Source: Monocercomonoides exilis PA203 (Eukaryota; Protista; Preaxostyla). Taken from it: 64,000 nucleotides of DNA. The position numbers and the translations under genes are program-made. Positions 3,220 through 46,779 of this stretch are shown here, piece after piece. Every line of letters begins with the position of its first letter. Position 1 is the first letter of the stretch. Location of the stretch: assembly GCA_001643675.2 (NCBI GenBank), contig LSRY02000033.1, positions 1,052,906 to 1,116,905 of the forward strand, in the 5' to 3' direction. The notes below the pieces were generated by a model. That model saw only the letters and a list, made by a program, of their open reading frames with translations, was not told the DNA's origin and searched no databases.

Positions 3220-4308
3220 ATGGCTTGCTCTGCTCCTTCTTTTGATGTAGCCGGAGATTTCGTTTGCAAATAATATTTTATTAAATGATATTATTTTATT
3301 TATTTTTGGTGATTGTTTTCTTTTTGGTGCTTTTCAATATTTTAAGTTTGTTCGACGCTCAGAGAAAGTATCACAACAATTTAAGACAATAAAAATTAAA
3401 TTTGATGATTATGTGAAAAGTCTTGCTGCGCCACGAGAGAAGCTTTCTGCATTACTTGCAACTATTGAAGGATACACTGATAGTATATTTTAATATTTTC
3501 TCAATTCACATTCAATAAACTTTTTTAATAATCATATTCAGCTGAAGCCACAGATACTCAAAGCCTTATTACGCATTTTGCCCAGTCAATAAAAGCTTTG
3601 GATGAGATGCATGCTTCGGTGGTTCAATCACTTCAAGTAACTGCAAGCACTCTTTTAAAATATGGTGCCCACGCAAAATCTACAAAAGCATGCGTTTTTT
3701 AATTTGTCTTTTTAAATTTGTTTTCATCTGGCAAATAGGATACGATGGATGCGAGATCACAGGCAATCAAAACGTTTGAATCAAAAGATGCAACACTTAA
3801 AAAAGAGAAACAAAAAAATGCAACTTCACAAAAGGCTGTTCAAGCGCAACAAGAAGCTTTCAAAGCGAATCAGGATGCACAGACTCGGTGCACGATGGCG
3901 CATAAGCAAATGAAAGAGCTCGAAGCAACAAGAGTCAAAGATATCAAGCAGATTGTAAATGATACGGCCATTGCAGCAATGCATTATCATTGTCGTGCAA
4001 TAGAAATGATGACAGATATGTGCAATGCAGAGGCAAGTGTGGATGTTGATAAGCAGCTGCAGACAATAAGTCAATGGCTCAAGCAGCTGAAAAGCATGGA
4101 TGGCTCAATGGACGTTGATGATGGAGCAACAACTGGAAGCAGAGCAGCTGGTGCTGCTGGCACAGACAACGATTCAGATGACGATGATGACGACGATGAT
4201 GATTCAGATGATTTGTCACGAAGAGGTCGGCCATCATCATCATCATCTTCTTCTTCTTCTTCTTCTTCAAGTCAGCTATCTTCTTCAAAAAGAAAGAAAA
4301 AGCCTTGA
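3220..4308 (+). CDS. FAM92/CIBAR-family BAR-domain protein (ciliary transition-zone type), 4 exons
   Basis: Spliced reading FVRRSEKVSQQF..LAAPREKLSALLATIEGYTDTE..LLKYG..LEATRVKDIKQIVNDTAIAAMHYHCRAIEM..VDVDKQL parallels FAM92 ([37 protein letters not shown]). Acidic/Ser tail. Confidence 0.75.
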
Positions 4309-24970: not shown

Positions 24971-27900
24971 ATGAGTCAAAGGATAGATTCATACGCAAAT
25001 ATTGGGGATATACAGCCATTAGCCCCTTCTAGACTTGTTACATGGCTGGCAACATTATATTATCCTCTTTATCATCAGGTTATTTTTAAATTTTTCAATT
25101 ATTTTTCTTCACCTTCCAACTATATATCTATTTTTCAATTTTCATTTTGTTTAACTTTTTATGTCTTCTTTTTTTATGTTTAAAGCCAAAACATCCAAAT
25201 AAGAAATGGAGCATTATTTTGTGGGCAATTGAAACATTAGAATTAATTTCACTTGCCGTACATGATATAAATATGCAAACACATAATTCAGAAGAATTTT
25301 CATATGTATGTTTTTTTATTCTTATTCTTCTCAATAATTTGTTTTTGCCAACAGTATTTTGGATTTTTGAATGGAACAACGTACTCTTTGCTTTTAGGAA
25401 ACTACTCTTATATTCTGTTCTATGTTTTAATTGCCTTTCAGCTTTGCGTGCTATTATTTTGGGGATTTTCAGCATTGTTCTATCGTCGAATTATGAACAC
25501 TCAACCATGGATCATTGAATGTCTCAGAGGAACAATTTTAGCAATTAACACAATTCTTTACATACCGTTTATAAATATTTCAATATCCAGTTTTGACTGC
25601 TACAAAAATTCATTTTCAAAAAATATTGTTCGAGGAAGTAACATTTCATGCTTTAGAAATGATTATTTTCAAATAATCACTGCAGTTCTGAGCATCTTAA
25701 ACGTTTTAGCGTTTTTCTCTTGGACGGTTATTGTACGTCGCATGATTTTTATTCATAATCCTAAGCATGGAGGCTATTTTTCCAAGCCAAGTGGAACATT
25801 TTCTTCAAATTTATATATTCTTACATTTGGGCTTGTCTTTTGCATGCGAATGCTAACCGACTGGCCATTTTGGCGAGGCGTAGTTAGCATTGGGGTGTCT
25901 GTTTTGGTGGTGCTTTTTATCATTTTTAGGCAACCGTTTTACAAAGTCAGCGGAAACATTTTGAAAGCATCTCAGTTTGTGTTGTTTGGATGTGTAAGAT
26001 TTGGAGCAGAAATTGCTTCGAATACAAAAAAGTATGTGAAAAATAGAATTATTCTTTTTGTGGGATGTACGCTTGGTGGAGTGTGTGGGGGAAGTGTGCT
26101 CATCGTGTTGTGCTTGAAGATTATCAAAAGGCGAAGAATAAAACTATTTCTGTTGGACGAACAATTGCAGCCACTCGCTGATCCATCGCTCTATCAATCA
26201 AAAAAAGAAAAAAACGAAGCGAAAAAAGTGCCTTCCATTCAAAAGAATTGCGAAGAGGATAGGCCTGAAATAGAAAATGAAACGAAGAAAGTCAATTTGG
26301 AGAAAGTTGGAAGCGATGATGAAAATACCAAAGATGAACTGAACCATATTGGAGAGTTGTTCAAAGGAGCAGAAGTTATACGAGAAGAAGATGAAGAAGA
26401 GTTGTCAATCAATGAAGGCAAAACGAAAGAAGAAGGAGATGATCGCTTTGAAGTTTCTGATGAAAATAGAGGAAAGAAAGAGGACGATAATTCAAGTGGC
26501 GAGCTTATCATTGCGCACTCTCTTGCTGAGATGATGAGTGTGACACTGCACAGCCAAGAGCAACCACTGCCTGTGACATCCGAGCTCAGCTCAACACTTC
26601 ACCCGAGCACAACTTCAAACAGCATCACGCCACATTCGACATCTCTTCCTCACTCTTCTCAATCATCCTCATCTTCCTCATCCTCCTCATCGAACTCTGC
26701 AGCAGGTGCAACATGCTCTCCTCTTCTGTCATCCAATTCAGCAGGCTCCTCTTCTGCTTCCTCTTCTTTGAGCCACGATCTGATCCATCGGCTGCGTCTG
26801 AAGCATCCTTCGCTTCTTGAACCAGGCACCCGCTTCCTGCAGGACCCTTCCCTTTGCACTGAGCCCTACATCGCTTATGTGACCTTTCTGCACAAACAGA
26901 ACATACTCAGAAATTCACAGTCTGCGCAGTCTGTGATCGAGTTTGCGATGTTTCAGCGGTATTTCGTGAAGGACATGAAGAAGTTCCGCACAATCATGAA
27001 AGGAGCACGCGAATGCTTGGAGCGGTCGATGGGCACTCGGTTTGAGCTGTTTTGCTGGTGGAAGGAATATTCAGAGCGATATCGCAGCGAAGAAGAAGAG
27101 GAGGAGGAGGAAGAAGAAGGCAGAATGAGTGAAGAAGAAGAAGAAGATGATGATGATAACGTTGAGGAAGATGATTTTGGAGAGAACGAGTTCAACGTCG
27201 ATGAAGACTCCAACCGCGAAAATGAAGAAGACGAAGAGGAGGAAGAGGAAGGCAATGCAGACAATGCAGACGATGTTGGGTGGAAGAATCCGAACATGCT
27301 GAATGATGTGAATCCTTCCAGCAGCTCTCATTCAGACAGCATCAATCGGATGCCCTCGCTGACTCCTTCACTCTCATCGTCTTCTTCACACAGACAGTCA
27401 CATTATGTCCCTCGTGGCGGAAGAGATGGAACGAGAGAGCCGAGCGATCTGAGGAACGAAAGAGACATTGCACCAGACGCAGCAGTGGCAGCAGGAGGAG
27501 GAATAGCTGTTATCACCGAAGAGGCAACAGAACACTTCAAAACAGCACTTTCGATGAAGAAGTCTGTTTTTCTGCAGCTTCTGAAGATGAAGCGTTCTGT
27601 CATTCAGCTCAAAAAGGAAGAAAACGAGTTGCGTTCAAACAGCTTTGACGGATACAAAGATGCAGATGACAAAGATGAGCTGCAGAGGATAACAGGAGAG
27701 ACTGTTGTGCACAATTCGCTTTCGAACATCGCTCGCTTCCTGTCTCAAATGACAGCAGAGGCAGAAAAAGCACACGAGCTGCTGAACATGCTCCTGCGGG
27801 CAGACCCGTACAACATCGCCTTTCTGAAGATGAGGGGCATTCTGAGCAGAGAAGTGCTGGGCGACAGCGAAGAGGCAGAGATTCTGCTGATACGCGCATC

Positions 27901-30900
27901 ACAGCTATCGAAGAAGACAGACGAAGAGGCTGAGCTGCTGAATGCACTGGAAATTGTCTCCAAAGAAAAGCGCGAAGAGGCGAGTGTTGCTGCCGAACAG
28001 CGCTGGGTGAAGAAGATAGACTCAGAGAAGCTGAAGGAGAAGGCAAGCACAGAGGCACTTGAGGCAGAGCTGGCGAGAATGACTAAAAGATTGCAGAGTC
28101 TGAAGAATGAGAACAAAAACGAGAAAAAAGAAGGAGCTGAGTCGTTGCACAAGCGAGACGAAAAGAGAAGAAACGAAAGGAGGAAGACGAAGACACAGCT
28201 GATACAAAAGGCATCGACATCTTCCAATGAAAACACTCCAGCGAGTGTTCAGAGGCAGAACACAAACAGCCATTTCGATTGGGCACGAATGATAAACGAT
28301 GCCCCATCATCAGCCTCAGAGAATGTGCACTGCCATTCTCAAAGTGCAGGATTGGGGTTTGAAGGGCTGAGAGACTACAGCGAAAGCAACTCGATGTCTG
28401 TGGAAAGCACCAATCGCCTGGCCATTGCACCGCCAATCTCTCCGATCAGCCAGGCGCAGTCAGCAGCAATGCAAAGGAGCTTCCAAAAACTGAACATTTC
28501 TCTGTCATCCACTCGGCGCTCTTCCTTCCAGACTCCAAGGAGCCAGCTGTCCACACCTTACCTGACTGCCTTCGAAGGTGGAGAAATGGAGCAATTCGGC
28601 CCAGGAAGCGAGATGGAGCCGCTGATGTCTGTCCGCAGCGATGCCTCGTTCCGCACGTCGCTGTGGGAAGACGAGGACAGCCCGAAGCTGTTTGTTATGC
28701 CACGCTGCTTTTCAGACGAGTACGACGAAGACATCAACCGAGATGCAGCACGCACTGACCGCTCTTCTCTGAGCGAGGCGTCGTTCTACATCGGCAGCGG
28801 CAATCACTCGCCTTCTCGTCGGAATGCCAACGCCATCACATCGCCCCGCACAGGCAATGCATTCGGCGCCAACCGCAAGGAGACATTTGAGCAGCAGCGA
28901 AAGAGAGCAGCAGAAACAATGAAAGGACTGCATTCAGTGCACACCTGCGATCAGATGGCGTATCTGCTACAGAGAAAGAGTGTGGCATCGCTTCGGCCAG
29001 TGCGGACAGGTATTGAGTCTCTTCTGACGAGCAAGTTTGTGGGAAAGAAGAAGTCGAAGCAGAAGGAGATTGTGCGATCGATGAATGAAGAAGAGAAGCG
29101 GAGCCTTCTGAAAGAGGCAGAAAAACGAAAGGAATTCATCATCAGAGAAAGAAAAGAGAAGAAGAAGGAAGAAAGGCGAGATTCGTGCTTTTCCAATGAA
29201 GATGACACAATCATGAACGACTTGATGAGAACAAGAGAATCCGATATTTATTCTGGTCGCAACTCGAATGAACAGCCATCTTCTTTTGCCTCAACAACAT
29301 CACAAAATGGTGCACGCTCTCAACCGTTGGGCCTTTCTTCTTCTTCCTCCTCCTCTTCCTCAAGCACTTCCTCTTCTGATTCGCTTGCCCCTCGTAAATC
29401 AGATATTTCTCCTTCATACATCCTCTCCAGCTATCGCAAGCAGACGATGGCTGTGCATCATGCCACACTCACCCGCAAGTCCTCTTCCTTAACGTGTCTG
29501 CAGGTGTCTGTCATTCTCCTCAATCTTCTACTGGCTGCTGTCTTTCTGTCTTCAATGGTCATCTTCATCGTCCTCACAAACACTCAACAAAAGCACATCC
29601 AACAGCTGAGCGATGTCTGCAGAATATCAACATCAGCCACTCACATCGCATCTTTTGCATTTCAAATACTGACTCATATTTATCAATCAACCACTTCATC
29701 CTCATCTTCATCCTCATCCTCATCCTCGTCTTTGTCTCCTCCTCCTCCTCCTCCTCATTCTTCTGCAACAGAACACACTTCACACACTTCTTTGAATACT
29801 TCAAATTCATTTCCAAATCAGTCTTCATCAAACATTCCATTTCAGCCACAACATCTTTCTCTTGCTTCGTTGGATGCATCATCTGAGCATCCTTTTCTTC
29901 TTCCTCTTTCCAACATCTCCAAACACATCAAAGAACACGAACTTCTATTGGATCGTCTTGTTCCTCAGCTCTACTCGTTTGTGGGTGAGTGGTCCCCCTG
30001 GGAGACATACAACCTCCACACTCTCGTCTTCGTCTTCGAGAACCAATCAACTTCTGCTTCGAATTCTGCTCTGGCATCAAATAACACACTTGTTTTAGCA
30101 TCTTCACCGCCATTTTCGACCTCACCGTGGGTGGTGCAGAGTGTCATGAACCAAACACAGAACGTGTTCACTGGGCTTCTCACAGCTGCTCAAATGGCTG
30201 GACGGCTGGGTACAGTCAGCGACGCAACGCTGTTGGACGATCCTGAGCCGATGCTGGCTGACTCGCTTTTCTGTGTCACTAACATTTTCCAGCCGATCCT
30301 CCAGGGAATGAAGAGGGCTGTGCTGGGTTTTTATGACGAGACGATCAAAGAATTGAGCAGGATCATCACAATTGTGCTTGGCATTGCAATCGGAGGAACA
30401 TTGTTTTGTGTTCTGCTTTTGTGCTTGGCGTTGCTGTATTTTGGGTTTGTTGTGACAAAAGAGAGGAAGCAAGTGATGCAGCGGGCTGTTGGACTGTCAC
30501 AGACACAGGTGCACATCATTTTGCGAGCAATGGCAGATGAAGAAGAAGCAGAAAAGAAACGAACCGAGGAAGAGCAAGAAAAGATTGAGCAAAGAGAGAA
30601 GGAACACGAAACAGTGATGGCAATAGAAGGAGAAAGGGAAGAGCAGAGGCGTCAAGTGAAGGAGCAGCGAAGAGAAGAAGCAAAGAAATGGAAAGAGGAG
30701 AAAGCAGTGTTGCGGAAAAAGAGAAAAGAAATTCGCCAGAAAATGCAGAATTTGCATGCACAAATGAAAGAGGAAAGGAAGCTGCAGAAAGCCAAACGGG
30801 GAGGATCACATTCACATTTGCCGAGTGCTTCTTTGCGCAAGTCTCCACTTGAGCAATCCTCCACAGCAATGGCAAAAGTGTGCCCGACTACCTCACCTTC

Positions 30901-33900
30901 TCTCGGCATCCTCACAAAATATGCGGCAGACGAGAGACAGACACCTCACACAAGGATAGCCAATCATGCTGGTCTGTATCAGTCACACGTCTCCCAATCA
31001 TTTCAGCACTTCAGTCCGCATCCCTTTCCCAAACAGTTCTATTCTGCTTCATCATCACCACGCTCACTACAGATCTTCCATCCGTATGAAACACCGCACA
31101 GCACAACGGACTCTCCTCAGTCGTATTTTATTCCAGACGAACGAAGCGAGATTCTCTCTCCTTATTCACCCACACGCTGTGTGGAGTCGATGAATCCGCG
31201 GAGTGCTCGAATGAGAGACAACTTCTCACCCTTTTTTCCGGTGCAGGCATCACCTCGCGTCGGATACCCAATTCTGTATGCCTCAACTTCTCAAGTCAGT
31301 CTTCCTCAGTCGAACTCAGCCACTTCGCTTTCTAAGCTCACCCACCAACAGACACCAATAATGCCAATTTCCACCTCCCCGTCTGTATCTCCTCGCTTAT
31401 TCTACAGTCCAATACCCCATCCGCAGCAGGACATTCCATTCACACAACGTTCGACATCATACCAGCAGCTACCACCGCCTCTGCATCCATTCGTATCTCC
31501 ACTTTCGACTGGAAACATCGCAATGTACCAGCAACAGCAGCAACCGAAGCATCCACTTGCAGTCTCTTTCAATTCAGGCTCTGACTCAACATCGGTGACT
31601 CCTGCAAACACTCCCTCAATTTCTCTATCTCCGTCGGCTTCTCCTCAGCCAATTCTTTCCACAGACTCTCTTTCCAACCTTTGCGAGCCTTTCGTGCCTA
31701 ACAGAAACGCTGCGTTGTCTCGTCCAAACTCGTCGCACTCGATTGCTCCTGCCTCTTCTTCAAATTCATCCTCCTCCTCCTCTTCTTCTTCTTCTTTTCA
31801 CCCTTCGCTTTCTGCTGTTCCATCTGATTCTTCAGCTGCTGCTCCATTTTTGAATCAGTCTCAAAACAATACAATTTCTCCGTCTTCATCTGAACATCGT
31901 TATCAGTCGGATCTAAAAAATGCACATTCTCCTGAAATACCACAAAGTTCATTGCAAACTTCTTGTAATGAAAGCAAAGAGCAAACTAAGCTTAATCAAT
32001 CTTCATTGAACAACCAATCTGACACAAAGATTCCTCAACCGGTTTCTGCTGAAGCACATTTTCTGCCTTTCAAATCACAGAAAGATTCGAATTCTTTGTC
32101 AGAATCGAAAATGGAAGCAACAGAAAAAACTCTTCAATCAACTCATAAATCTGATATCCCGCAAGAGATGGAACAAGAGAAACGACAGAAAGCAGCACAA
32201 ACTTCGTTGAGAAATGAAACTTTGCAACAGTCTCATTCAACTTCTGTAATTCTGACTGGATATCAATCGAAGGATATTCTTGCTCAGCCTGTTCCATTTG
32301 AGCCTCCCAAGGAATTAAGTGTTTCATCTATTCCTCCTTCGAAGGAAGCAAATATGACGAGCACAAATAACTTAAATAAAGATAATTCATCAAATGAAAA
32401 CAACAATATGCCAGAGTTTCGTGTTGATTCTGTTGGAAATTCCACTTCTGAAAAAAAGGCAGCCTCTTCTTCCGAAATACCCAACATAAAACTGTCGAAC
32501 GCGATCGACACTCCAATGGCCAATTCATCTTCTCCATTTGCACAAGTTGCACCTGCAGAGTTGTCTCCAGTCACTTTGAGTCGTCTTGAAGCAACGTTGA
32601 CAGCAAAAGACGAAGCATTTACCGCACAACTGCTTCAGCAATTGGAGGAAATCCAAAAAGCACAGCAGCAACCTCTTTCATCAGAGCAAGTGGTGCTTGT
32701 GCAGAGGATTATTGAGAATCACCACGAAGAGATGAATCTGATGTGGAGTCAGATGGTTGTGGAAGAGCAGAAAGCGAAAGAGTCGTCGATGATGCAGGAA
32801 ATGATGGTGCAACAGCAAGGAAAAATGGAGCAGCAGCTGGAAAAAGTATCTTCAGAAGCTGATCAATCGATTCAGCAGACAATGGAACGGATCAAAGAAC
32901 TGAAAAGGATGCAAATTGCTTTGTCGAAGCAACAAGAAGAATGGGAAAAAGACGAAAAAGAAAGACGTGAGAAAATTATGTCTCTTATTCGCACAAGCCA
33001 CCCATCAGTTCAGCATCCAACAGAAGTCCATCAAACAGCCACAACGACAGCTGCAGATGCAACTTCAAAGGACGGTGCTACAATTCCTCTACCAAAGCTT
33101 CCTCCAATGCTTTCTCTTCCAAAGATGTCTGAACTGAATTTAAATAGCATTCAATCACCTTCCAGCAAGTCTTCGCCTCAGGTCGCCTCTCCTCATTCAC
33201 CAGGATCCGTTGTGCCTTCCACTGAAACAGATCCAAGCAATCTAGAAATATTAAAGCAGCTGTATGAACAACTTGTGCAAAGGCAACAATTGCTAAGGCA
33301 ATTAATGATGACAATGTCACCGCAAGCACTTGCAGCTGCAAAAGTGGAAGATGAGCAGCTGCAACAGCAAATCACTCAAACGGCACTGGCTTACGAACTT
33401 CAACAACAAGAAGTGATACAACAACAGCTGTTACTGCAATATCAGCAAGCACTGTTAGCTCAACAGCAGGAGCTCGTCAAAAAGAATAAAGAAGCTGAAA
33501 GGAAAGCAAAGGAAGAGCAAGAGATGAGGGAAAGAGAGGAAAGAGAAAAGAAAGAGAAAGAGGAAAGAGAAAGGAAGGAAAGAGAAGAGAGAGAACGAAG
33601 AGAGCAAGAAGAAAGAGAGCGAAGAGAAAGAGAAGAGAAAGAAAGGGAGGAGAATGAAAAAAGAGAAAGAGAAGAAAATATGAGAAAAGAACAAGAAGAA
33701 AGAGAAAGACTTGCCAGAGAATCTGCTTGTCAGCAAGAGCTCCAATTCAGCGAAGAAGAAATGACGGAACAAGAAAAGCAGTTTCAACAGATTTTGCTTG
33801 ATGGGATGCAAACTCAGATACAACTTCTTCAGCAGCAACAGCAACTGCTGGAATTACAACAGCAGCACCAGATTCTAACTGAGCATTTGCTTTATCATCA

Positions 33901-36124
33901 GAATGATGTCATACCTCAAAATGGGGAATTGCATCAAAGTCTCAAAGAAGGCGAAGGAGAAAGCTCCCACGCAACTTACCCTGCTGTCCAACAAAAGCAA
34001 TCAAGCTCAGAGAAGTTGATGGACTATCAACCGTCAAATGGAGGCGTTCATTCACATAACCAGATGTCCACGTTGAATGATTACGATAACTTTGAGTCAC
34101 TGATCATTCCGCAATCTCCTATGGGAAATCTTCCTTCTGAAACAACAGAGTCATTTGGCGAACCTTCTCCAGTTTCGCCACATGTATCTCCAACATCCCT
34201 TGTGCTTCCTCAATGCCCACTTACATGGATATACAATGATATTACCATTACGTACGATGATGGTGACCCTACAAAAGAACTAAATAGGGGAATATTCCAT
34301 GGAAACGATATTATTGATGATTCTGAATGGGAAGCTGAATTTAACGAAAAAGTTTCTGAATTAAACGCTGCTTTCACATTAATTCCGTCAATTTTACCAA
34401 AATCCTTTTTTGGCCAATTGTTTGTAACTGTGCTTGTTCCATTCATAACAATTGCTTCTTTAACTGGGTGTGTTGCTATAATGGCCAACGATCAAAATGA
34501 TATGAGCACAACTCTCATCCTTTCATCTTATCGCCCATCAATTATGCAGATTCTTCTCTATCTATCACTCCGGATGGTATACAACATGTCACAAATAGAT
34601 ATACCTCTTCATGAATTTCCTCTTTCAACAAATCCTGTTTGGAGGGATACATCACACCTTTCAAGTGACATTGAAGTTTTAGCGAATCTTTTGCAGGAGT
34701 GGAGCATTTACAATACAAAAGTTAATAGAAGGGTATTTTATGGAGCGAACGAGAAGACCAACACAACAGATGAGTTGATTGATGGAATAAAGGCTCAAAG
34801 ACTTTCATCTGACATAAATGCTGAGCACCTTCTAAGCGAGAAAAATTGCTTTTTGAGCGACCTGTGGAACGACACTGAGCTTGGGTATCCGACAGAAGAA
34901 ACAGGTTGTAATAATCTTGATCCAAATAGGATAGACACCCTTTCACCTCCATTCTTTGGATATGCAATGCTCCAATCAAAGCTGCAACAACGCATATCAG
35001 TTCTGTGCAAAAGGTTGAAATCGAAGGAAATTGACTCATTAGTTCCAGTGTATAGTGACCTAAGTTACGTAATGAGTTCGATCAGGAATGATGCTACAAA
35101 CGCGGTCGATGAACTCTCACAGCAGATCATTAACAGACAAAGATTCCAAATAAAGCAAGCACAAATTGCTGTTAGTGGAATCGTGACCGTTGGTCTGATT
35201 CTGTGCTTATTAACAACTTGCATGTGCGGATTGAAAGCTAAAAAAACACTTGATTCAATATCTGTCGAGACAAAGCAACTTCAGGGAATGATTCCTCCCA
35301 CAGTATTCTTCTCAACTGACACTTCAATTGTTATGGAGAGTTCACTTTCAGAATCAACAGAAGAAATGATAATGCCTCAAGAAACAAATGATCTTTCGGT
35401 GAAGAAATCTCAGTCACCAACAAATTCACGTATGAAGCAGTATTATGTATCTCCTTTGACTTCTATTCCTTCTTCCACACAATCACTTCTTTTGAATACA
35501 AACGCAAATCAACAATCATCTTCTCATCTTACGTACAAGCATCTGTTTCCTTCGATGATTACTTCTGTTCCTCTTTTTGACCGGGGCAGAGAACGGATTT
35601 TGGCTTCAGTGGAAACAGTGCTGAGCATTCTTGACAACAATTGCAACAAGGATTCCACACTTTTAACGATTGAGCAGCTGATTAACTTTGTTCACAAACA
35701 ATTCTGTTACGAAGAGCATTTGATGGAGATGATGAAAGAGAGAGTGTCTCAACAGAAAAATCAACAGTTTTCATACAACAATCAGCAATCTACAAGCTCT
35801 CTTTCAGCAGTTCTACCATTTTCTGCAAGATCAACATGTACAGTTACATCTGCACAAAGGCAGTTAGTATCATCTCCTCATTCACCCACAGATACCAGCG
35901 AATCTTCGTCTTCCTCGGCTTCATTTTTTGCTTTGCTTTCTCATCACCACACGCAGCATATGATTATAAGGCACAGGCTAACATTTCTGGTGCCACATCT
36001 TTTGTCGTCTCGCAATGCTTCCAGAATTGTTTCAACGAAAACTCTTATTTCTATTTTTGATTCTCATTTTTCGTCTGATGACGTTCTGTTGAGCCATCAT
36101 GCCCAACAGATATTTCGTCTCTAA
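24971..36124 (+). CDS. Giant (~3700 aa) TmcB/TmcC-like multi-pass membrane signalling protein with C-terminal hemerythrin-like domain
   Basis: Two short 5' introns join to the 3606 aa ORF. N-terminal TM bundle, a TPR-like block (AHELLNMLLRADPYNIAFLKMRGILSREVLGDSEEAEILL), two TM-pair/extracellular modules, and C-terminal TSVPLFD..QFCYEEHLM..HHTQH..SHFSSDD. Confidence 0.7.
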
Positions 36125-36543: not shown

Positions 36544-39500
36544 TTATTGAAGCAGAACTGGAGCTAGCAGCAAAGTTGGGTCTGTGGTGGTGATTTGTGG
36601 TGTTTGTGATTTGTCAGTCGTTTGTTCAAGATATGCTAAAAGCGCATCAAAAGTTCCATTTGGAAATTTGTTTAAAAATGTCGTCAAGAAACGAGTAAGC
36701 CATCCAATTTGATCATCCTTCCCAACTGATCCAATTTGATATGCAACTTCTTCTTCTGGTGTTGCTCCGATGTGAACAACATTCGGCGTGCCTTTTTCGA
36801 TGATATCATCTTTCATTTGTGTGATTGTTGACAAATTAAACATCGAACCAGAATGACAGCAATCAGATATCAAAACTATTCGCGTATCACGATATGCTTT
36901 GCTAACTATCAAGTCACAAAGGCACCAATCTATAATTACTCCAGGGTACAACCCTTGCACAGTCATTTCAAAATCTTCAAATAAAAGCCCCTCACTACCG
37001 CGTGATGTTGCCATCATTTCTCTTTCTGTTATCTCTTCATCGCTCATCCCTTTTCTCCTCATTGACTCTGTCAGCTTTGCTTTGTCTGCCATCGACACAG
37101 GAAATGAATAATATGAGCATTTCCCCCTCTTTTTGATTCCTGTTGGATCGTCTATTTCTCCGCCATGACCAGAGAAAAACTGAATGAATTCGTCGCCAGC
37201 ATGGTCCAACAGCCAGTCCATCCACTGATAACACTCCAACGAAGAACCATCACACCTGTAAAAGATCGTGTATCCTCTTTGCCTCAAAATTTTCGCCAGC
37301 ATCAGTGCATTATTCAGTGGTCCTGCTTCCAAACTATTATCTCTTCCCTCGTAAGGATTGATAAACATCCCACACAATCTTTCAAAGCGATGTCTATTTG
37401 GAAGCTGCTCCTTAGACAAGCGTGCAAAGTTGATGCATCCTAAGCCATCTAATCTGCGCAGTTTCTCACCGTAAATGGTGTTTTCATAAGGGTATGGCTC
37501 TCTCAACACATCTAACAAATTTAACCATCTGCTTTCCTGTCTCAGTTCTTCTATTGGAGTTAATCCAACAAATTCGGTTGGAAGTTCTATTGTATTGTCT
37601 GGGCCAAGTGCTTCTAAAGCATCAACCAACATTTCTGGAGAGATATCATTCAGCTGCATCTCCCTTTCACCAGCGATCAGTGGTTGAATAATCGGATTGA
37701 TAAGTAACTCGTCCGATGTAGTTGTGGTTTGCATGTGCTGTTCATTTTCCAGTGCTTTTTTCATCAATGCCTCCAATTTAAAGAAAGAAATACGTGGAAT
37801 TGCTTCAATCATTGAAATAAAACTCATTGTGAATACATCTTTGTATTTTCCACCTCCATAGCTCCGTCTACGTAATGTTTCTCCGTGCCTGCATGCACCA
37901 ATATGCACAATATTTGGCAATGTGCGTTCAAACATTGCTTTATATTCAATGCTAGTTGGATCCATTGTGTCCAGCTCATCTATGCCCAAATTGAACATGT
38001 CTCCGGATGTGTTAGCAATTGTAATCAGCACAATTCTCATTCTTGGAGAATAAACTTTCCTCATCACAAGATCATGTAAAATGGTATCTTGAATATAATC
38101 ATCTCCAATTCCATTCACTTTCTTCCGCATCTTGGCACCTTGTTCCGCTGTAGTTGTTCCAGGTTCTTTGCCTTTTTCTCTCAATTCTCTGAGCCAATCG
38201 TCTTTCGCATCCTCATTCATAAACATCAGAGCATCTGCTTTATTTCCTCCCTTTAGTGTTTTGACACCAACTACATTTGTCGACATTCCATTGAAAATAC
38301 TCACAAACTCGCGTTTAACATGCTCCAGAAGCCAATCCATCCAATGATAATACTCTGTTGCTGTGGGGTCGATGAAGTAAAGCACTCGATATCCTCTCTT
38401 CACATACAGCTTGGCATACAAAATGGCATCATCCACAACTGCTGCTTTACTTGAATCTTGTTGCGGGTTCATCGATTTCGTGTTTGTTGTCACGAACAGC
38501 GCGCAGCAGAAGTTGACAGTCACATTCGGAAAAGTATCAGTCGTCAGGCGATCGAGATTGATGCATCCAATTGAGTCCAGAAATTGCATGTGCTTTCGGA
38601 AGCGCGAGAGATATTCAAAGGGTCGCCTCATCAAATCTGCAAAACGAATCCATCTGCGTCGCTGTGCAAGTCCTTCATCAGCTGTAAACACATCAATCTT
38701 TGGCAGTTCGTACAATTTCTTAAAATAATTTTCACGTGCTTCGTTTGGATCAACCACAGGAGCCTTACGATGTGCATCTGCTGGCTGTTCAGCAATCAAA
38801 TAGTTGATCATCTCGTTTGTCTGTCTCTCTTGTTCTTCGAGTTCTTCTATTTGCATCAGAATTGCTGGAAGATCATCTTCCTCTTCACCTTCGTCTGCAA
38901 TAAAAGGAAGCATGTCTTTTATGAATCTTTCTTCTTCTTTCTGTTTTTCTTTTTCTTGCTTTTCTCTTTCCTCCATTTCTGATATCAGCTTCAGTGCTTC
39001 CTCCAATTCTTGATCGACAGCTTGATTTTTCGCTTCTTTCCCTTTTTCTGCTTTCTGCTTTTGTTTTTCTATTTCCTTCAGTTCTTCTTGCTCTTTTCTC
39101 TCCATCTCTTCAATTTGGGAAAGTGCTTCAGCAAACCACAATTCTTCCTCCGGATCTTTTTCCTTCCATTCCTCCATTTCTTTTTCTTTTTCTTTTTCCT
39201 GCTTTTCAAAAGGGTATCTTTCTTCTCTTTTTTCATTTGGAGCAATTTCTTGTCTCTCTAACTCATTTTGTTTGTTAGCATTTCTTTTTCCAACTGATTC
39301 ATTTTCTATCTCTCCTTTGAATTGGGTTTCTTGTGCCTCGCTGTTCACCCAATCCAGCTGACATTTAAAGAAATGCTCATCAAATTGCTCGACCGTCTGA
39401 AAGTGTTTGTGGCAAATGCAGCATTCGATATTATTTGTCTGAGGTTGTTGTGTTGAGGATTTTTCAAATGATGTTGAATAAGATGAAGAAGAGGAAGAGG

Positions 39501-41282
39501 AAGAAGCTGAATGAAGATCATGTGGTTTATCCAATGAAGATGAAGTCGAAGGATTTCTTGGATGAATCGGCTTGATGAATAAAGATGGTTTTATCATGCT
39601 TGCATCTACCATTTTATTCATGTATTGCTTCGCCAGATAGTTTGATGGATTTGTATTTATTGTCTCGCGTGTTGCAGCAAATGGAGGTTTTTTGTAAAGT
39701 CCAGATGAATTGCTATGCGAAGAAGGAGTCGAAGAAGAATCAAATGGAATAAATGGCTGAAATGGTTGGGCCTTTCCTCTGCCCAGCGATAAATTTTTCG
39801 GAGTTGAACGAATTTGGTGTTTTTGAGCAGTTTGTGGGATTTTTGTTTGAATTGAATTGTCTTTAAAAACATGCTGTTGATATTGATGTGAAAGATGTCC
39901 AGGAATTGAAGAAAAAGAAGGAGATGAAGAAGAAGATGATGATGAATAAGAAATAGTTGTGGTTGAAGAATATGAAGATGATGACGATGACGACGACGAC
40001 GACGAAGATGCAGATGAAATTTCAGAAATTGCAGAATTATTCGAAGAAACAGAAAAAGAAGGTGATTTTGAATGATTGAAGATATCGAAAAGCCCGGTAA
40101 TGCTTTCTTTTCTGCGAGTTTTCTTCATTTCATCTATTTTTGGTTGGATGTGTATGTTATTAAAAATTGCACGAAGTGAAGGACGATGTTGAGGTATCTA
40201 AAAAAAAGTTATAAAATATGAGTTATCACAATTCAGAAAATGTTAATCAGTGGTGAATGGGTCATAAATGCAGTGTAATTAACAAATAAATAATACAAAC
40301 AGGATGCATCATCGCTTTCACCAAGTCATTCAATTCTGAAGAATAGGATGATGGAAGAGATGGCAGTATATTGCGTTTTTGCGAAGAAATCACAGAAGCA
40401 ACAGAGTTCCCGGAAAACGGAATTGTATTTGTACATATGAAATAAATAATTGCACCTAAAGAATATATGTCAGATTCTCTACATAGCCTTTTTATTCAGA
40501 TTTCAAATTTTGAAGAGTTATTTAATTCAGATAATTTCACATTGTCACACACTCTTTGCGCTCATTAACTTCAACAGCTCTAAAAGGCAAAATGTTTCTT
40601 GAAACATTCTCCGTCCATTGCGTTTTTTGAATCCATTTTGATAAACCAAAGTCACCTTTTATAAATAACCAAATATTTATTTGGAAAATACAAAAAATAA
40701 AAATAAAAATAAAAGCTTACCGATTCGTACCACGTTTCCGGGCATTATAAAAACATTGCCAGGATGTAAATTACTATGAATAATATTGTGTTGGTGAAGG
40801 AATTCAATTGCCAAAACTAACTGTGAAAATATCTTCCAGATAAACTTTATCAATTGATAACGAAAGAATAAACAAATGAACTGATCTTTATGCAAACCTC
40901 TTCGTGAAGCGCCTTTCTGTACATTTCCATGGACATTAAATTTTTTAAGTTTGACATTTTACAGTCATCCATTAAAAGATAAACATAATCTCCTCTTGAA
41001 AAGCATTGAAGATAATTCAGCAGTCCGTCGTTTTCAATTTCTTCAAGCCTTTTCAACGTTTTTATATCTGAAACATTCAATTTTAATTGTGTTTTGTCGA
41101 GTGATTTCCATATGAAATATGACCTGGTGTAATTATTCCAGATTCTTGATGTTTCTCCAACGGTTCCTTGATGAAACGTAAATTTAATCTTAACTTAAAA
41201 TAAAGATGATAGATAATTTTGATAGCACTTCCTTAGTTCTTCAATATTTAAAACAAAACATACAATCCTCAAATCGTCTCAT
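36544..41282 (-). CDS. NEK-like pseudokinase fused to zinc finger, UIM-like helices and two tandem C14 metacaspase domains
   Basis: ATG 41282 MRRFEDF. Exons give IWKIFSQLVLAIEFLHQHNIIHSNLHPGNVF, GDFGLSK, SDIYSLG, YSSELNDLVKAMMHP|IPQHRPS, spliced in frame into ORF 36544-40128, which has FFSGHGG and ISDCCHSG. Confidence 0.8.
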
Positions 41283-41781
41283 CGATAATTAAGTTAATAA
41301 TTATATTAATTGATCTGAATCACAAAATTTCTCAACATTTTGAATATCAAACAACTTTTTATTATCATGTAAACACTTGTTCTTTCAGTTTTGTTTGAAA
41401 TTTTCAATCAAGAATTATTTTTTCTTGAAGTTTTCAAAGAATAAAAATGTGAATATCAAAATAATTAAAAATGAAAGAAACGAAAAAGAATGAAAACCAA
41501 GATCATTCAATCTCATTCTATCATCTTTAACTACAAGGATTTGCTGAAAAGAAATTTATCATTGAATTTTATAAATTTGTTAAAAAAAGTTAATTGCAAA
41601 ATGTTTTTTAAAATATTTCCCCGTTTTCTTTTCTTTCCTTCGTTGTGCTTCTATTTTAGTTTCTAATTTGTCAGAGTAGATTGTAAAAGAATATTTATTT
41701 TCATCCACAATAAATGAGCATTGTAAACATTTTTCTGTTGAACATAAATGAACAAAAAACGTTCAAACAACTTGAACTGTG

Positions 41782-42196
41782 CAATTTTGGGAAAGATTGC
41801 ACATATGCGGACCCTTTTGATCACAGATCCATAATAATATTTTTAGGGAATAAATGAATTATTTTTCTGACTTTTGTAATTGTTTTAGGGTTAGGGTTAT
41901 CATAAAAATCTTCTTTAAAAAGTTGTTTTAGGTTGTAGGGTTGTGTCTCGAATCTTCTTTTTAGGGTTTTGATGAGAAAAGTGAGTTTTTTAATAGACCA
42001 AATTTTTAGTGTTAGGGATATAGATAAAAGAGTATGTGAAAATAGAACCCTTTGGGGTGCATAAATAGTACAACAGGGTAGGGTGTTGGAATAGGACGAG
42101 AAGGGTGCGGGTTCGATTCCTTCCGCATTCTTCTTTTTTTTGCAAAAATTTTCAAAAATTATGAGGTCCGCATAAGTGCATTCTTGCCCAATTTTG
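41782..42196. mobile_element. Degenerate MITE-like element with ~32 bp imperfect TIRs (possibly Tc1/mariner-derived)
   Basis: CAATTTTGGGAAAGATTGCACATATGCGGACC vs GGTCCGCATAAGTGCATTCTTGCCCAATTTTG. The right end is followed by TA; the left is preceded by TG. Confidence 0.55.
42054..42131 (+). pseudogene. tRNA-like relic with Pol III B-box
   Basis: GGGTGC..GCATTC ends pair, GGTTCGATTCC T-loop and T-run follow. D and anticodon arms do not fold canonically. Confidence 0.4.
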
Positions 42197-43739
42197 TAAG
42201 AATAGTTTGCAAAAACGTTGGAGAATTCTTAAAAAACCCTCTTCCAGAGAAATTTCCTTCGATCAAGAACAATTCAGCAGTAGCAGCTTCTGTGTTTCCG
42301 GTCAAAGCTAATTTATATCGCAGGAAACTCGACACTTCTGGTGGGTGCCCAGTGTAAATTGTAGTACAGCTTCAAATTTCTTTTCCAAGTTGATCAAAAT
42401 TTAAGTTGCAATCCAATATGAACGATTGAAATTGTTTTTCGTTTTTGATTGTTTAAAAAGCACAATTAAGTTGTTCTGAGCAATAACATTCATGAAATTT
42501 CAAGAGAATTTTGGTAGTTATCGGCCTGTGTGTCATTATATGTCAAAAATTAAAAAAATTCAATATTTTTCAGAATAGGTTAATAACAATCTCCAAAAAA
42601 TCATGAAAAAATAAGTATACATTAAATATTCAAAATACGTATTTTCATTGTTCAACTGTGAAATTTTTGCATCATGCGAACACTCCTGAACAAAAGAATT
42701 CTCACGCTGTTGTAGCTAAATGTCATGGATTTTTGTTGTTGATTAATTATGAAACATGACCCAGATATTCCAGATTGAAGTTTGAGGAGGAAAAAAAGTG
42801 TCTATTCTTCAAACAAAATTGTTTAATAATGAATGCAAAGGAAAAGTAATAATAAAATCGCTCAAACTGGTTATATGCAATGTAGTTGTAAATAACATGC
42901 ATAGGACTACTCAAATATTCAACAAATTAGCTAAACGTTATCATCTCATTTACAAAGCTGTTGTTTTCAACTAATCATGTGATCTATTATGTATCATGAT
43001 CAAATTTTTCATCAAAATGAATTCTTGATAAAAACATTTCATTTTCACAAGTAATACTCTTTACAAAAAGTGGAAGATGACATTTTATAGATTTTAGACC
43101 ATATATGATTTGTTGAATAGAAAATTCTCATTTTAATTTGAACTTGAAATATGTACAATAATTTTTGCCTGGCTATTGAAAAGATAAATGAGAATATTGG
43201 TAAAGGGGTCATGCCTGAGAAGGACGGATTAGACGAATCCATGTTATCAGAGGGCTGTGCGTCTCAGAGTGTTTTGTTTGCACGATTTACTGAGGCTTAA
43301 CTCTGAATATTGTCCGATATTTTTAAATGACTAAGTAGGAAACGAAAAAAAAGTCCGTTAATCTTCTCACAAGTAAATGTTTTAAAATTCATAGATATTC
43401 TCTTTTCAGCTTGAAAACGTATGAATGATTGAATATAAAAACATTGAAAAAAAACATTAACGACGGATGATTGGAAAGCCTTAATAATACCATGGATGAA
43501 GTACTACCCCCCAAATAAATTGTTTTTTTTTTTGGGAAAGGAAAAAATAAATGGGAATTTGAGGGAATCCAATGTGGGAAAAAGTGAAAGGGTTTTTTTT
43601 TTGAATTACGATGTGGTCATCCATTGTGGTTTAAATGATGATAACTTTGAGTAATTTTTTTTTTTTTTGTATCTTGACTTATGATTTTTATAGTGAATAA
43701 AAATCGGAAAAAATAGGTCAAAAATGACAGAAAATGAAA

Positions 43740-44880
43740 AAAGTTTCTAACCCTCCCCTTTAGGAGATAAAAGAAACTACTTCAAAGAGTTCAATGAAAT
43801 GACATAAATCAAATGGATCTTCATTTTTGGTTGATGTTCATTGAAAACTTTAAAGTATTTTTTGAGTCAAATTTTTAACCCCAAAAAAGTCAATTTTTTG
43901 ACTTCAAGAAAAAAAGTTTCTGACTTCTGAAAAAAATTAGAAAGGGGAAAAAAATAAAGGAATAAGGAAGAAACAGGCACGTGGGGTGGGGGCCGCGCGA
44001 CAAACGCGGCAAAAGGGCGGGGAGCGAAAGCGACCGAGCTTTTGCCGTGTGGAGCGTCGGCCATTGGGTGGGACTCTTACCCATCAGAAAAGGCCATTAT
44101 TTTCTTTAAAAATAACACCCCCTGCGTATCACTTTTATGATATACAAATTTGAGGGTTTTCAAATTTTTGTTGAAAAAATTTGCCGCTCCCTCCCAAAAA
44201 TTATTAATGAAGATAATTTATTTCTTTTTTATAAACTTTATGTGATTTTCTTCTTTTTTTTCGCGAGATGGATGAAAATCTGCGCGCAGGATTGATGTGC
44301 GCAGATTTTCATCCAGCGAGCGCTACCGGAGCAGTAGCGCGAGTGATGTGACCCTGACCTCGCGGTTAGCGAGAAAATTTTGAAAAATAAGGAAAAAAAG
44401 GGGTCATTTTCAATGGAGAAAATCGATATTTTTGTGTTTAAATGTGAAAAAAAATCAAATAATTTCTGAAAAAAAGTAATATGAAGAGATATCTCTTACG
44501 TATATTTTGATATAGTTTTTATTTAAATCTTATGAGTATATGTGGAGTTATGATCATATTTTATTTTTTTCAATTTTGTTATTTTTTAATAAAATTTTTA
44601 TAAATTTTTAGAAATTGATGAAAATTGGATAGAAGATATATGATATGATAATATTAATTTAGATGATATTATTGTGAGAATATTGATAGTTGTGGTTGAA
44701 TAATAATGAAAAAATAACATTCTGAAATATTAACAAAAATAAGATACTTTTTTGTTTGCTCAGAACCAACCATCAATATCAGTATTCTTATATATTATTA
44801 TCATCTATATTTTATCTATTATGTTATATAAGAAAACCAATTGAATTCAACTATTCTTTAAAATGTTATAATTTTTTTAA
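43740..44880 (+). ncRNA. Candidate structured RNA region (series of hairpins with G-U pairs) in the rDNA-upstream spacer
   Basis: Stems ACGCGGCAAAAG/CTTTTGCCGTGT with a GC-GAAA-GC tetraloop, 20-bp TGGATGAAAATCTGCGCGCA/TGTGCGCAGATTTTCATCCA, and a long AT-rich imperfect hairpin ~44590-44880. Confidence 0.35.
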
Positions 44881-46779
44881 TTTTTTTCATTTTTTAAAAT
44901 ATTTTTTTATCTCAACAACTGACTTTTTCTTTCTATAGAAAAAATTCAACAATAATGATATTATGATATTGTATATAATATATTTTTTTGATGTTAGTCT
45001 GTCCATCAATTTTTGAGATAAAAAAATAATTTCAATTTTTTGTTAAAAACAATAAGAAAATTATTTTTTTTGTTTTTATTTATTTTCAATACATCTCAAT
45101 TTTATTGTCAAATAAATAGCAATCATATAATATCTCTCTATTATTTTTATTTTTAAAGTTGAACATCATTTCATTTTTTTTATAATTTTTTTACCAAAAT
45201 TTTCAATCTTTATTAATATTTTTCTTTTTATTCCATGGACAGATATATTTGAAAAAAATATTCTGTATAGGTTATGAGGGGTGGGGAATGTGTTGGTGTA
45301 TAGTGAGATTGATTACAAACTGTTTTTGAAAAGTCGAATTCTTAACATAGAAAAATGGTTTTGATCAAGATCAAACTTTTTTTCAAAAAATGATATTTAA
45401 TAAAGAAGTAGGAATTAGTGGTTGATGAAAAGTTACGTATAAGGGTAATATTATGAGAGGAATTGATTGGTGTAAAAATCAGAAATTAATTGATTCAAAT
45501 TGTGGAATGATATGTTAAATAAAAAAATTTCAGTCAAAATTTTCTTAATTATTTTTAAAATATCTCGATAAATAAATTTTTCTAAGTCGTGAGACTTTAC
45601 AGAAGTGTTAGTTGGACCATTTGTGAATTTTTGAAGTCAGGGTCAAAAATTCGAAAAATGTGAAATTTTCATTTTTTCAGATTAAGTTGAATTTAGCTCA
45701 AGTTAATCAGAAAAATTGCAAAATTGGTGAAAATCGGTTTTTATGAAAGTTGTGATCGAAACTTATGAAAACACAAAAAGTTCGGATAATTCGTGAATAG
45801 TCCGCTGAATTTTTTTCTCGGGCCAGATTGGTCTGGTTAGTGAGAAAATGTGATATGAAGATTTTGACTGAAAAAGTGGTGATCTTAGATCAACGACCGA
45901 AAAACATGAGGTCTCAGATTCCTTTGATAATTGGCAGATGGCAAGGACGTGAGCCCCTTATAAACATACTCGAATCTAAAATTTTTCTACCGAGCGGTTG
46001 TGGCAGGGCAGTACGGACAAGTTGTTCATTTTGACTGAAAAATCGAAAATAATTTTTTTTCTCGAAAATTTCAAAGTGAATATAAAATATGATTAAACAC
46101 ATGAATATGCGTTGTAATGTTGTATATTGGTGATTTTTGGTTGGATATGCTTATTTGTAGTTTCTGAGTTATAATCGAAGTTTTGAGTGGAAATGGTCAT
46201 TTTGGAGGTAAATCGAGTATAACTCCAGAAGTTGTGGCCAGATAAATTTGATATTAATATATGATATATGCACATATAGTGCGGTAATAGCATGTATATG
46301 GGTGTTGGTGGCGGGGGTCTGGCAGGCTGTCCAGAAAAGAAATAAAAATCTCAAAGGTGACTGGGGGTGCCTGGTTGGTGAAGTCACAGAGAACGAACCA
46401 GGGGCAAGTACCTGAATCGAAACACATATGACCGGCACAGTAACCCATGCCCGGATGTGGCCAAACGGGGTTTCGATCGGCCCAGTGGTTGCTGAGAAAT
46501 CCGAGCAGCTAGTTGTTTTGAGTTCAGTCATGAAAATTTACATAGAAAAGTGAGTGGGGGGTATTGACTTTGGAGAGCTGTGGAGTGTGAAGGGAGGGCA
46601 AGTGACCAGAGTCAGAGGGATATGTTGGGGTATGTTAGTGGATGTGGGATGTGGTGTAATTGCTAAGAGATTGGTCCAGCAAATATTTCTCCACACATCA
46701 GTTAGTATAATTTTTCTATGAAAATTGAATTTTTTCTATGATAATTTTTCTATGTGATTATGGCTGCCCGACCTCGAAG

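Follow-up and report, generated by a model that had tools for sequence, protein, structure and literature searches.

We analyzed a 64,000-nucleotide stretch of the Monocercomonoides exilis PA203 genome (contig LSRY02000033.1; C29:1052906-1116905, hereafter the window) and identified on its minus strand, at 41282-36544, one intact gene for a cytosolic, multidomain metacaspase-family protein of 1460 residues. Its product joins a kinase-like domain that lacks the catalytic Asp, a zinc finger, a catalytically dead metacaspase-like module and a second module with an intact dyad. This lineage-specific variant of the metacaspase architecture is real, and from it we infer a mechanism: in the reading that we favor and consider somewhat better than an even bet, the pseudokinase, finger, dead module and active module belong to a single gene in which module 2 would be the sole protease and the other parts would regulate or target it.

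The gene is divided into six exons (Table 1) with a coding total of 4383 nt, corresponding to 1460 codons and a stop. Exons upstream of the metacaspase frame were derived from three-frame translation combined with splice signals, and exon 1, read in this way, supplies the sole start codon ahead of kinase strand beta-1. The five introns measure 70, 53, 65, 65 and 103 nt, each is bounded by GT and AG, and all are in phase, leaving the frame open across the full 1460 codons. An initial annotation, made from the letters alone, had proposed that splicing across an intron at 40300-40198 joins a kinase in frame to a 1194-aa open reading frame (ORF; 40128-36544, minus), and both the fusion and the intron coordinates were borne out. 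Although the ORF has its own ATG at 40128, the frame is open upstream to 40197; exon 6 opens with IPQHRPSLRAIF, the last conserved part of the kinase (RP motif), which lies 23 codons ahead of that first ATG with no stop in between, such that the kinase tail shares an exon with the metacaspase ORF. When Pfam was searched with each exon separately, exons 2, 3 and 5 matched the Pkinase profile in order (profile positions 9-92, 102-139 and 177-245; E 7e-4, 2e-6 and 1.5e-5), which identifies the kinase fold by profile, with scores of 19.5, 27.9 and 25.0 bits that each fall singly below the 31.7-bit cut-off. Exons 2 to 5 were also collinear with the Streblomastix protein KAA6382983.1 (P0019), a truncated record in which the kinase is followed by only the beginning of a dead module. 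Exon 2 corresponds to its residues 21-96 and exon 4 to residues 152-180 with no gap after exon 3; the exon 3/exon 4 and exon 4/exon 5 junctions are gapless and the exon 2/exon 3 junction is off by one residue.

The two metacaspase-like modules share 30% identity over 335 residues (E 2e-35). The catalytic dyad is gone from module 1, which carries Met for His in FNGMS (38295-38281) and Asn for Cys in TIANTSG (38022-38002), and is intact in module 2, where FSGHGG (37176-37159) supplies the His and DCCHSG (36864-36847) the Cys. This confirms the combination of a dead and an intact C14 domain described in the initial annotation. The evidence that both are C14 domains differs between the two: Pfam Peptidase_C14 (PF00656) matched module 2 (E 1.2e-9) and left module 1 unseen, which we recognize by its similarity to module 2 and its predicted fold. 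An AlphaFold2 model of module 1 reached a predicted local distance difference test score (pLDDT) of 90 and a predicted template modeling score (pTM) of 0.91, and its top Foldseek matches were Arabidopsis MC9, Geobacter GSU0716, the yeast (Yca1) and Candida metacaspases and Trypanosoma brucei MCA2 (E down to 4e-10), with MALT1 and caspases ranking after the metacaspases. The dead module is thus predicted to keep the metacaspase fold, consistent with the caspase-type fold that had been proposed for it. A profile of the family matched yeast Yca1 (E 6.5e-11), in an alignment that extends through the p10-like part. An EREMQLNDIS-like motif follows every full-length non-terminal module in the alignment, and its Arg, conserved in the kinase subfamily, might at a guess serve as a processing site.

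Searching the M. exilis genome (82.3 Mb, 101 contigs) revealed at least five family loci, three of which are kinase fusions, while two C2-type paralogues lie on contigs C13 and C26. The translation of one paralogue matches exactly a protein entered at NCBI under M. exilis, in agreement with the stated source. Kinase-fused members thus comprise, beside the window gene, two other M. exilis loci and two Streblomastix proteins. The first of the M. exilis loci, MONOS_9428 (KAH7820415.1; contig C30), carries a kinase at residues 22-269, a finger and four modules; as in the window gene, its kinase-like domain lacks the catalytic Asp and it has a C2HC finger and dead modules followed by an active one, but its dead modules number three. 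Streblomastix strix KAA6380207.1 (P0011) likewise places a kinase-like domain without the catalytic Asp ahead of dead and then active modules, although the Streblomastix proteins, unlike the window gene, have neither the finger nor the charged spacer. Modules of these relatives (MONOS_9428, Streblomastix) are 35-45% identical to those of the window protein. The second M. exilis locus, on contig C10, is a close copy of MONOS_9428 that shares its kinase, finger and four-module layout and contains an in-frame stop inside the third module (C10:142000-151999, about 4020-4022 of that piece, minus); this stop may reflect a nonsense mutation, a very short intron or a mistake in the assembly. In Streblomastix (contig SNRW01006479.1), the P0019 gene has a DDE_3 transposase gene immediately upstream of it (879-2343 of the piece examined).

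These relatives bear on an alternative in which a small kinase-like gene (41282-40150) and an adjacent metacaspase gene, starting at the ATG at 40128, have been mistaken for a single gene. The ORF's own ATG would suit such an arrangement, as would the outcome of a search for RNA runs, which listed none for this stretch. We nevertheless regard it as very improbable, the least probable of the readings weighed here: the split would deprive the kinase of its last conserved part, which exon 6 encodes in the metacaspase frame without any stop ahead of the ATG, annotated proteins of a paralogue and of another genus show the same fusion, and in MONOS_9428 the piece with the RP motif likewise lies inside a giant open frame together with the modules.

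To define the wider family, a profile of eight modules was run against 1.84 billion representative proteins, and 25 proteins scored below E 1e-30, with ordinary metacaspases thereafter. Below E 1e-44 there were 19 proteins, 15 with two modules, one with four and three short ones (237-307 aa) with a single module. All named members belong to Preaxostyla, namely M. exilis, Blattamonas nauphoetae and Streblomastix strix. Of the full-length members, all but one keep both His and Cys in the final module, whereas the earlier modules are dead in most members, often with Tyr for His; exceptions with intact earlier modules are the C13 paralogue of M. exilis and two Blattamonas proteins. N-termini vary by subfamily and include C2 domains (P0002, P0003), an EF-hand with C2 (P0001) and the kinase-like domain. 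P0015 was considered as a possible orthologue and set aside, being just 27% identical. Tandem C14 proteins also exist outside the family, and nearly all of those checked retain the His and Cys motifs in each copy, among them P0069, P0077, P0102, P0106 and P0110, some with EF-hand or CCCH-finger N-termini.

In a tree of the modules, those of the kinase subfamily (window gene, MONOS_9428 and Streblomastix P0011) separated into a dead-module clade (99/99) and an active-module clade (100/98). Because dead and active modules form separate clades, the dead/active split on this tree predates the divergence of Monocercomonoides and Streblomastix. The end branch of module 1 was 0.41 compared to 0.80 for module 2, and the dead modules of the window gene and Streblomastix P0011 have Asn in common at the lost Cys; by these measures the dead module does not appear to be decaying.

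The same observations bear on whether the entire gene could be a drifting, functionless subtelomeric paralogue whose odd motifs reflect decay. A TTAGGG telomere begins at 61195 at the end of the window, placing the gene ~20 kb from the chromosome end (the MONOS_9428 locus at about 1062900-1064000 of C30 is ~32 kb from its contig end), module 2 is missing an acidic loop and one Asp, the related C10 copy has its in-frame stop, and the protein searches returned no identical product. Against this stand the 1460 open codons, the five introns that keep both GT..AG and reading phase, the intact dyad of module 2, substitutions shared with homologues from another genus (Asn for the Asp of the kinase and for the Cys of module 1) and branch lengths that are not inflated, and we judge decay to be quite unlikely.

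We next consider the kinase-like domain, where HSN replaces HRD at 40778-40770 (Asp to Asn, Arg to Ser) while DFG (40653-40645) is kept, in agreement with the initial annotation; the beta-3 Lys is kept as well. The annotation's statement that the glycine-rich GxGxxG loop is lacking held in part: the loop is degraded but not absent, retaining two of its three Gly. The catalytic Asp was missing in all four kinase-fused proteins compared, whose motif reads HSN for the window gene, HGR for MONOS_9428 and HLN for the two Streblomastix proteins. Since this Asp is absent from each of the three homologues that have a complete kinase domain, its loss is old and tolerated, which fits a pseudokinase rather than decay. 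The proposed NEK-like identity fared less well. Among solved structures, exon 3 best matched Nek7 (E 3e-6) and exon 5 Nek2 (E 1.6e-4), by a thin margin over GCN2, PKR and PknB, which score nearly as well; exon 2 gave no useful match to solved structures, and the kinase of MONOS_9428 has no kinase-family preference. A NEK identity is therefore only weakly indicated.

Between the kinase and the modules lie a Ser-rich linker, the finger and a charged spacer. The linker is disordered, matches no Pfam family at a meaningful E-value and shows no conservation with homologues. The CxxC..H..C finger reported in the initial annotation is present and is conserved between the window gene and MONOS_9428 within otherwise unalignable linker sequence, 12 of 43 columns being invariant, including all four ligands and an FD.HF..CQ..W pattern. 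The annotation further took this finger for a UBZ, an assignment that was not supported: its ligand spacing fits, yet a profile of the two fingers searched against all solved chains found classical C2H2 fingers only (ZBTB20, E 2.4e-5) and matched no UBZ structure, and Pfam returned nothing meaningful on the finger. The spacer, which has no paralogue in the M. exilis genome, had been credited with three UIM-like helices. The first fits the UIM consensus, a pattern that appears in 0.015% of spacer shuffles, but the Ala-to-Ser spacing of the other two is broken, Pfam UIM gave no hit on any of the three, and UIM-like motifs are absent from MONOS_9428 and the Streblomastix homologues. We accordingly offer ubiquitin binding as a hypothesis based on one motif.

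These domains were part of the proposal that the protein is an intramolecular switch of the caspase-8/cFLIP kind, in which the dead module would dock onto its active neighbor as caspases dimerize, thereby activating it, and the pseudokinase, UBZ and UIM would gate the pair on ubiquitin signals. Conservation of the dead and active tandem, the predicted fold of the dead module, the one exact UIM consensus and the UBZ4-like spacing of the C2HC ligands all accord with such a switch. Against it, an AlphaFold2 model of modules 1 and 2 in tandem, built from only 13 sequences, reached a pTM of 0.56 as opposed to 0.91 for the single module and gave no confident arrangement. Solved metacaspases are moreover monomers in which extra strands cover the caspase dimer face. 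Taken with the outcome of the finger and UIM searches, these results make such a switch unlikely, and the intramolecular pair envisaged in the annotation was not upheld.

Returning to the reading that we favor, with module 2 as the only protease, the conserved dead module would act as a non-catalytic partner, either as a scaffold, as a substrate-docking site or as a regulator of the neighboring active module, and the kinase-like domain and finger would serve as binding or targeting parts, not as enzymes, setting where or when the protease acts. Module 2 itself departs from its family at two places. It reads KKRGKCS where the family has the acidic loop ExDGxSE, and it has Asn in place of the Asp of the family's 'ND' motif, with the Asp of DCCHSG kept. 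The loop aligns to EEDGMDD of Yca1, which is acidic where module 2 is not and which we take to be a calcium site; both altered places are presumably important in solved metacaspases. With no acidic loop left in module 2 at the place that aligns to the calcium site of other metacaspases, calcium control of the kind they use would be doubtful here.

Several points weigh against this interpretation or narrow it. The activity or specificity of module 2 may differ from that of its relatives, since Asn stands for the family's 'ND' Asp. HER3 carries the same Asp to Asn change and retains weak activity, and by this analogy Asn in place of the catalytic Asp would not prove a dead kinase. Exon 1 and all splice junctions were drawn from the DNA and its homologues. 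Neither the homologue search nor the profile search of representatives returned a protein identical to the gene product, and for this reason the window gene may be unannotated in protein sets. Restriction of the family to Preaxostyla is not proven, as some members come from the runs SRR14212508 and SRR14212495 or carry no source name. A bolder version, in which oxymonads evolved their own single-chain protease switch, with the long-conserved pseudokinase and finger sensing a signal and the dead copy controlling its active neighbor, to give a pathway of regulated proteolysis, possibly for cell death, that is independent of caspase/cFLIP and of mitochondria, is one that we hold to be improbable.

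Among known systems, the type I metacaspases (Yca1 of yeast and MCA2 of Trypanosoma brucei; MEROPS C14B) have the same fold and share FSGHG and DxCHSG with module 2. Unlike them, the window protein carries its modules in tandem, each with its own ~50-residue helical lead-in (RW..F...KP..Y...LD..G.INL.R), and has no Pro-rich or LSD1-type prodomain. Dead metacaspase homologues retained in evolution, as module 1 has been, are also known from Trypanosoma brucei MCA4 and the cyanobacterial pseudo-orthocaspases; these are separate proteins, whereas here the dead copy is fused ahead of the active one in a single chain. The pseudo-orthocaspases have Tyr and Ser for His and Cys (PMC6426788), substitutions shared by several dead modules of the window gene's family. 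With respect to caspase-8 and cFLIP(L), the likeness lies in the pairing of an active caspase-fold protease with a dead paralogue, and the difference in that those partners are two chains joined through the caspase dimer interface, an interface that did not emerge from the tandem model of the window protein. Separase (clan CD, family C50) also combines, within a single chain, an inactive protease-like domain beside an active caspase-fold domain and a large regulatory N-terminus, but it belongs to a different family, and no recent duplication of the active domain gave rise to its pseudo-domain.

Outside animals, the relatives of caspases are chiefly metacaspases, whose control is poorly understood. 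The proteins described here form a natural series in which a dead copy precedes a live one and both follow a sensor domain that varies between members (C2, EF-hand, kinase-like), and regulation by pseudo-proteases of their active twins is therefore directly testable. They also bear on regulated proteolysis in M. exilis, a eukaryote without mitochondria. In the literature we found no paper on a metacaspase-pseudokinase fusion, a two-p20 metacaspase or a dead/active tandem, although the claim that no protein with this architecture had been described does not stand, given that the layout is already public as MONOS_9428 and KAA6380207.1; such relatives sit in public protein sets under automatic names. 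A Pfam survey of M. exilis reported 'two metacaspases' and nothing on architecture (PMC7539657), a count to be set against the family loci found in the genome here.

Table 1. Exons, domains and motifs of the metacaspase-family gene, in window positions.
Feature	Position	Strand	Description
Exon 1	41282-41264	-	ATG and six codons (MRRFED) plus one base of the next codon; donor GTATGT
Exon 2	41193-40898	-	Kinase N-lobe; degraded glycine loop QGTVGE; beta-3 Lys in FIWK
Exon 3	40844-40721	-	Kinase catalytic loop IIHSNLHPGNVF
Exon 4	40655-40553	-	DFG and activation segment, as read from the letters
Exon 5	40487-40301	-	Kinase C-lobe (SDIYSLG ... MMHP)
Exon 6	40197-36544 including stop	-	Kinase tail first, then the rest of the protein to the stop
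Ser-rich low-complexity linker	40128-39424	-	ORF residues 1-235
C2HC zinc finger CCICHKHFQTVEQFDEHFFKC	39423-39361	-	CX2CX12HX3C; ligands conserved with MONOS_9428
Glu/Lys-rich spacer, probably helical	39333-38719	-	~200 residues; 27% E, 13% K; three similar acidic motifs
EEELWFAEALSQIE	39150-39109	-	Single exact UIM-consensus match
Module 1, dead metacaspase-like	38676-37633	-	ORF residues 485-832
EREMQLNDIS linker motif	37668-37639	-	From alignments; pLDDT 91-97 in the module 1 model
Module 2, metacaspase-like with dyad	37551-36547	-	ORF residues 860-1194

Around the gene, the region upstream (41300-46100) is AT-rich, with 27-31% GC, and contains no ORF of 100 aa or longer on either strand. 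A lone two-unit telomere repeat, TTAGGGTTAGGG, lies within it at 41885-41896, ~600 bp upstream of the start codon and far from the terminal telomere array. On the other side, a single 3606-aa ORF on the plus strand (25304-36124) converges on the 3' end of the gene, stopping 420 nt off; its translation is hydrophobic in several places and has long runs of Ser/Glu/Gln as well as Glu/Arg/Lys repeats that resemble coiled coils.

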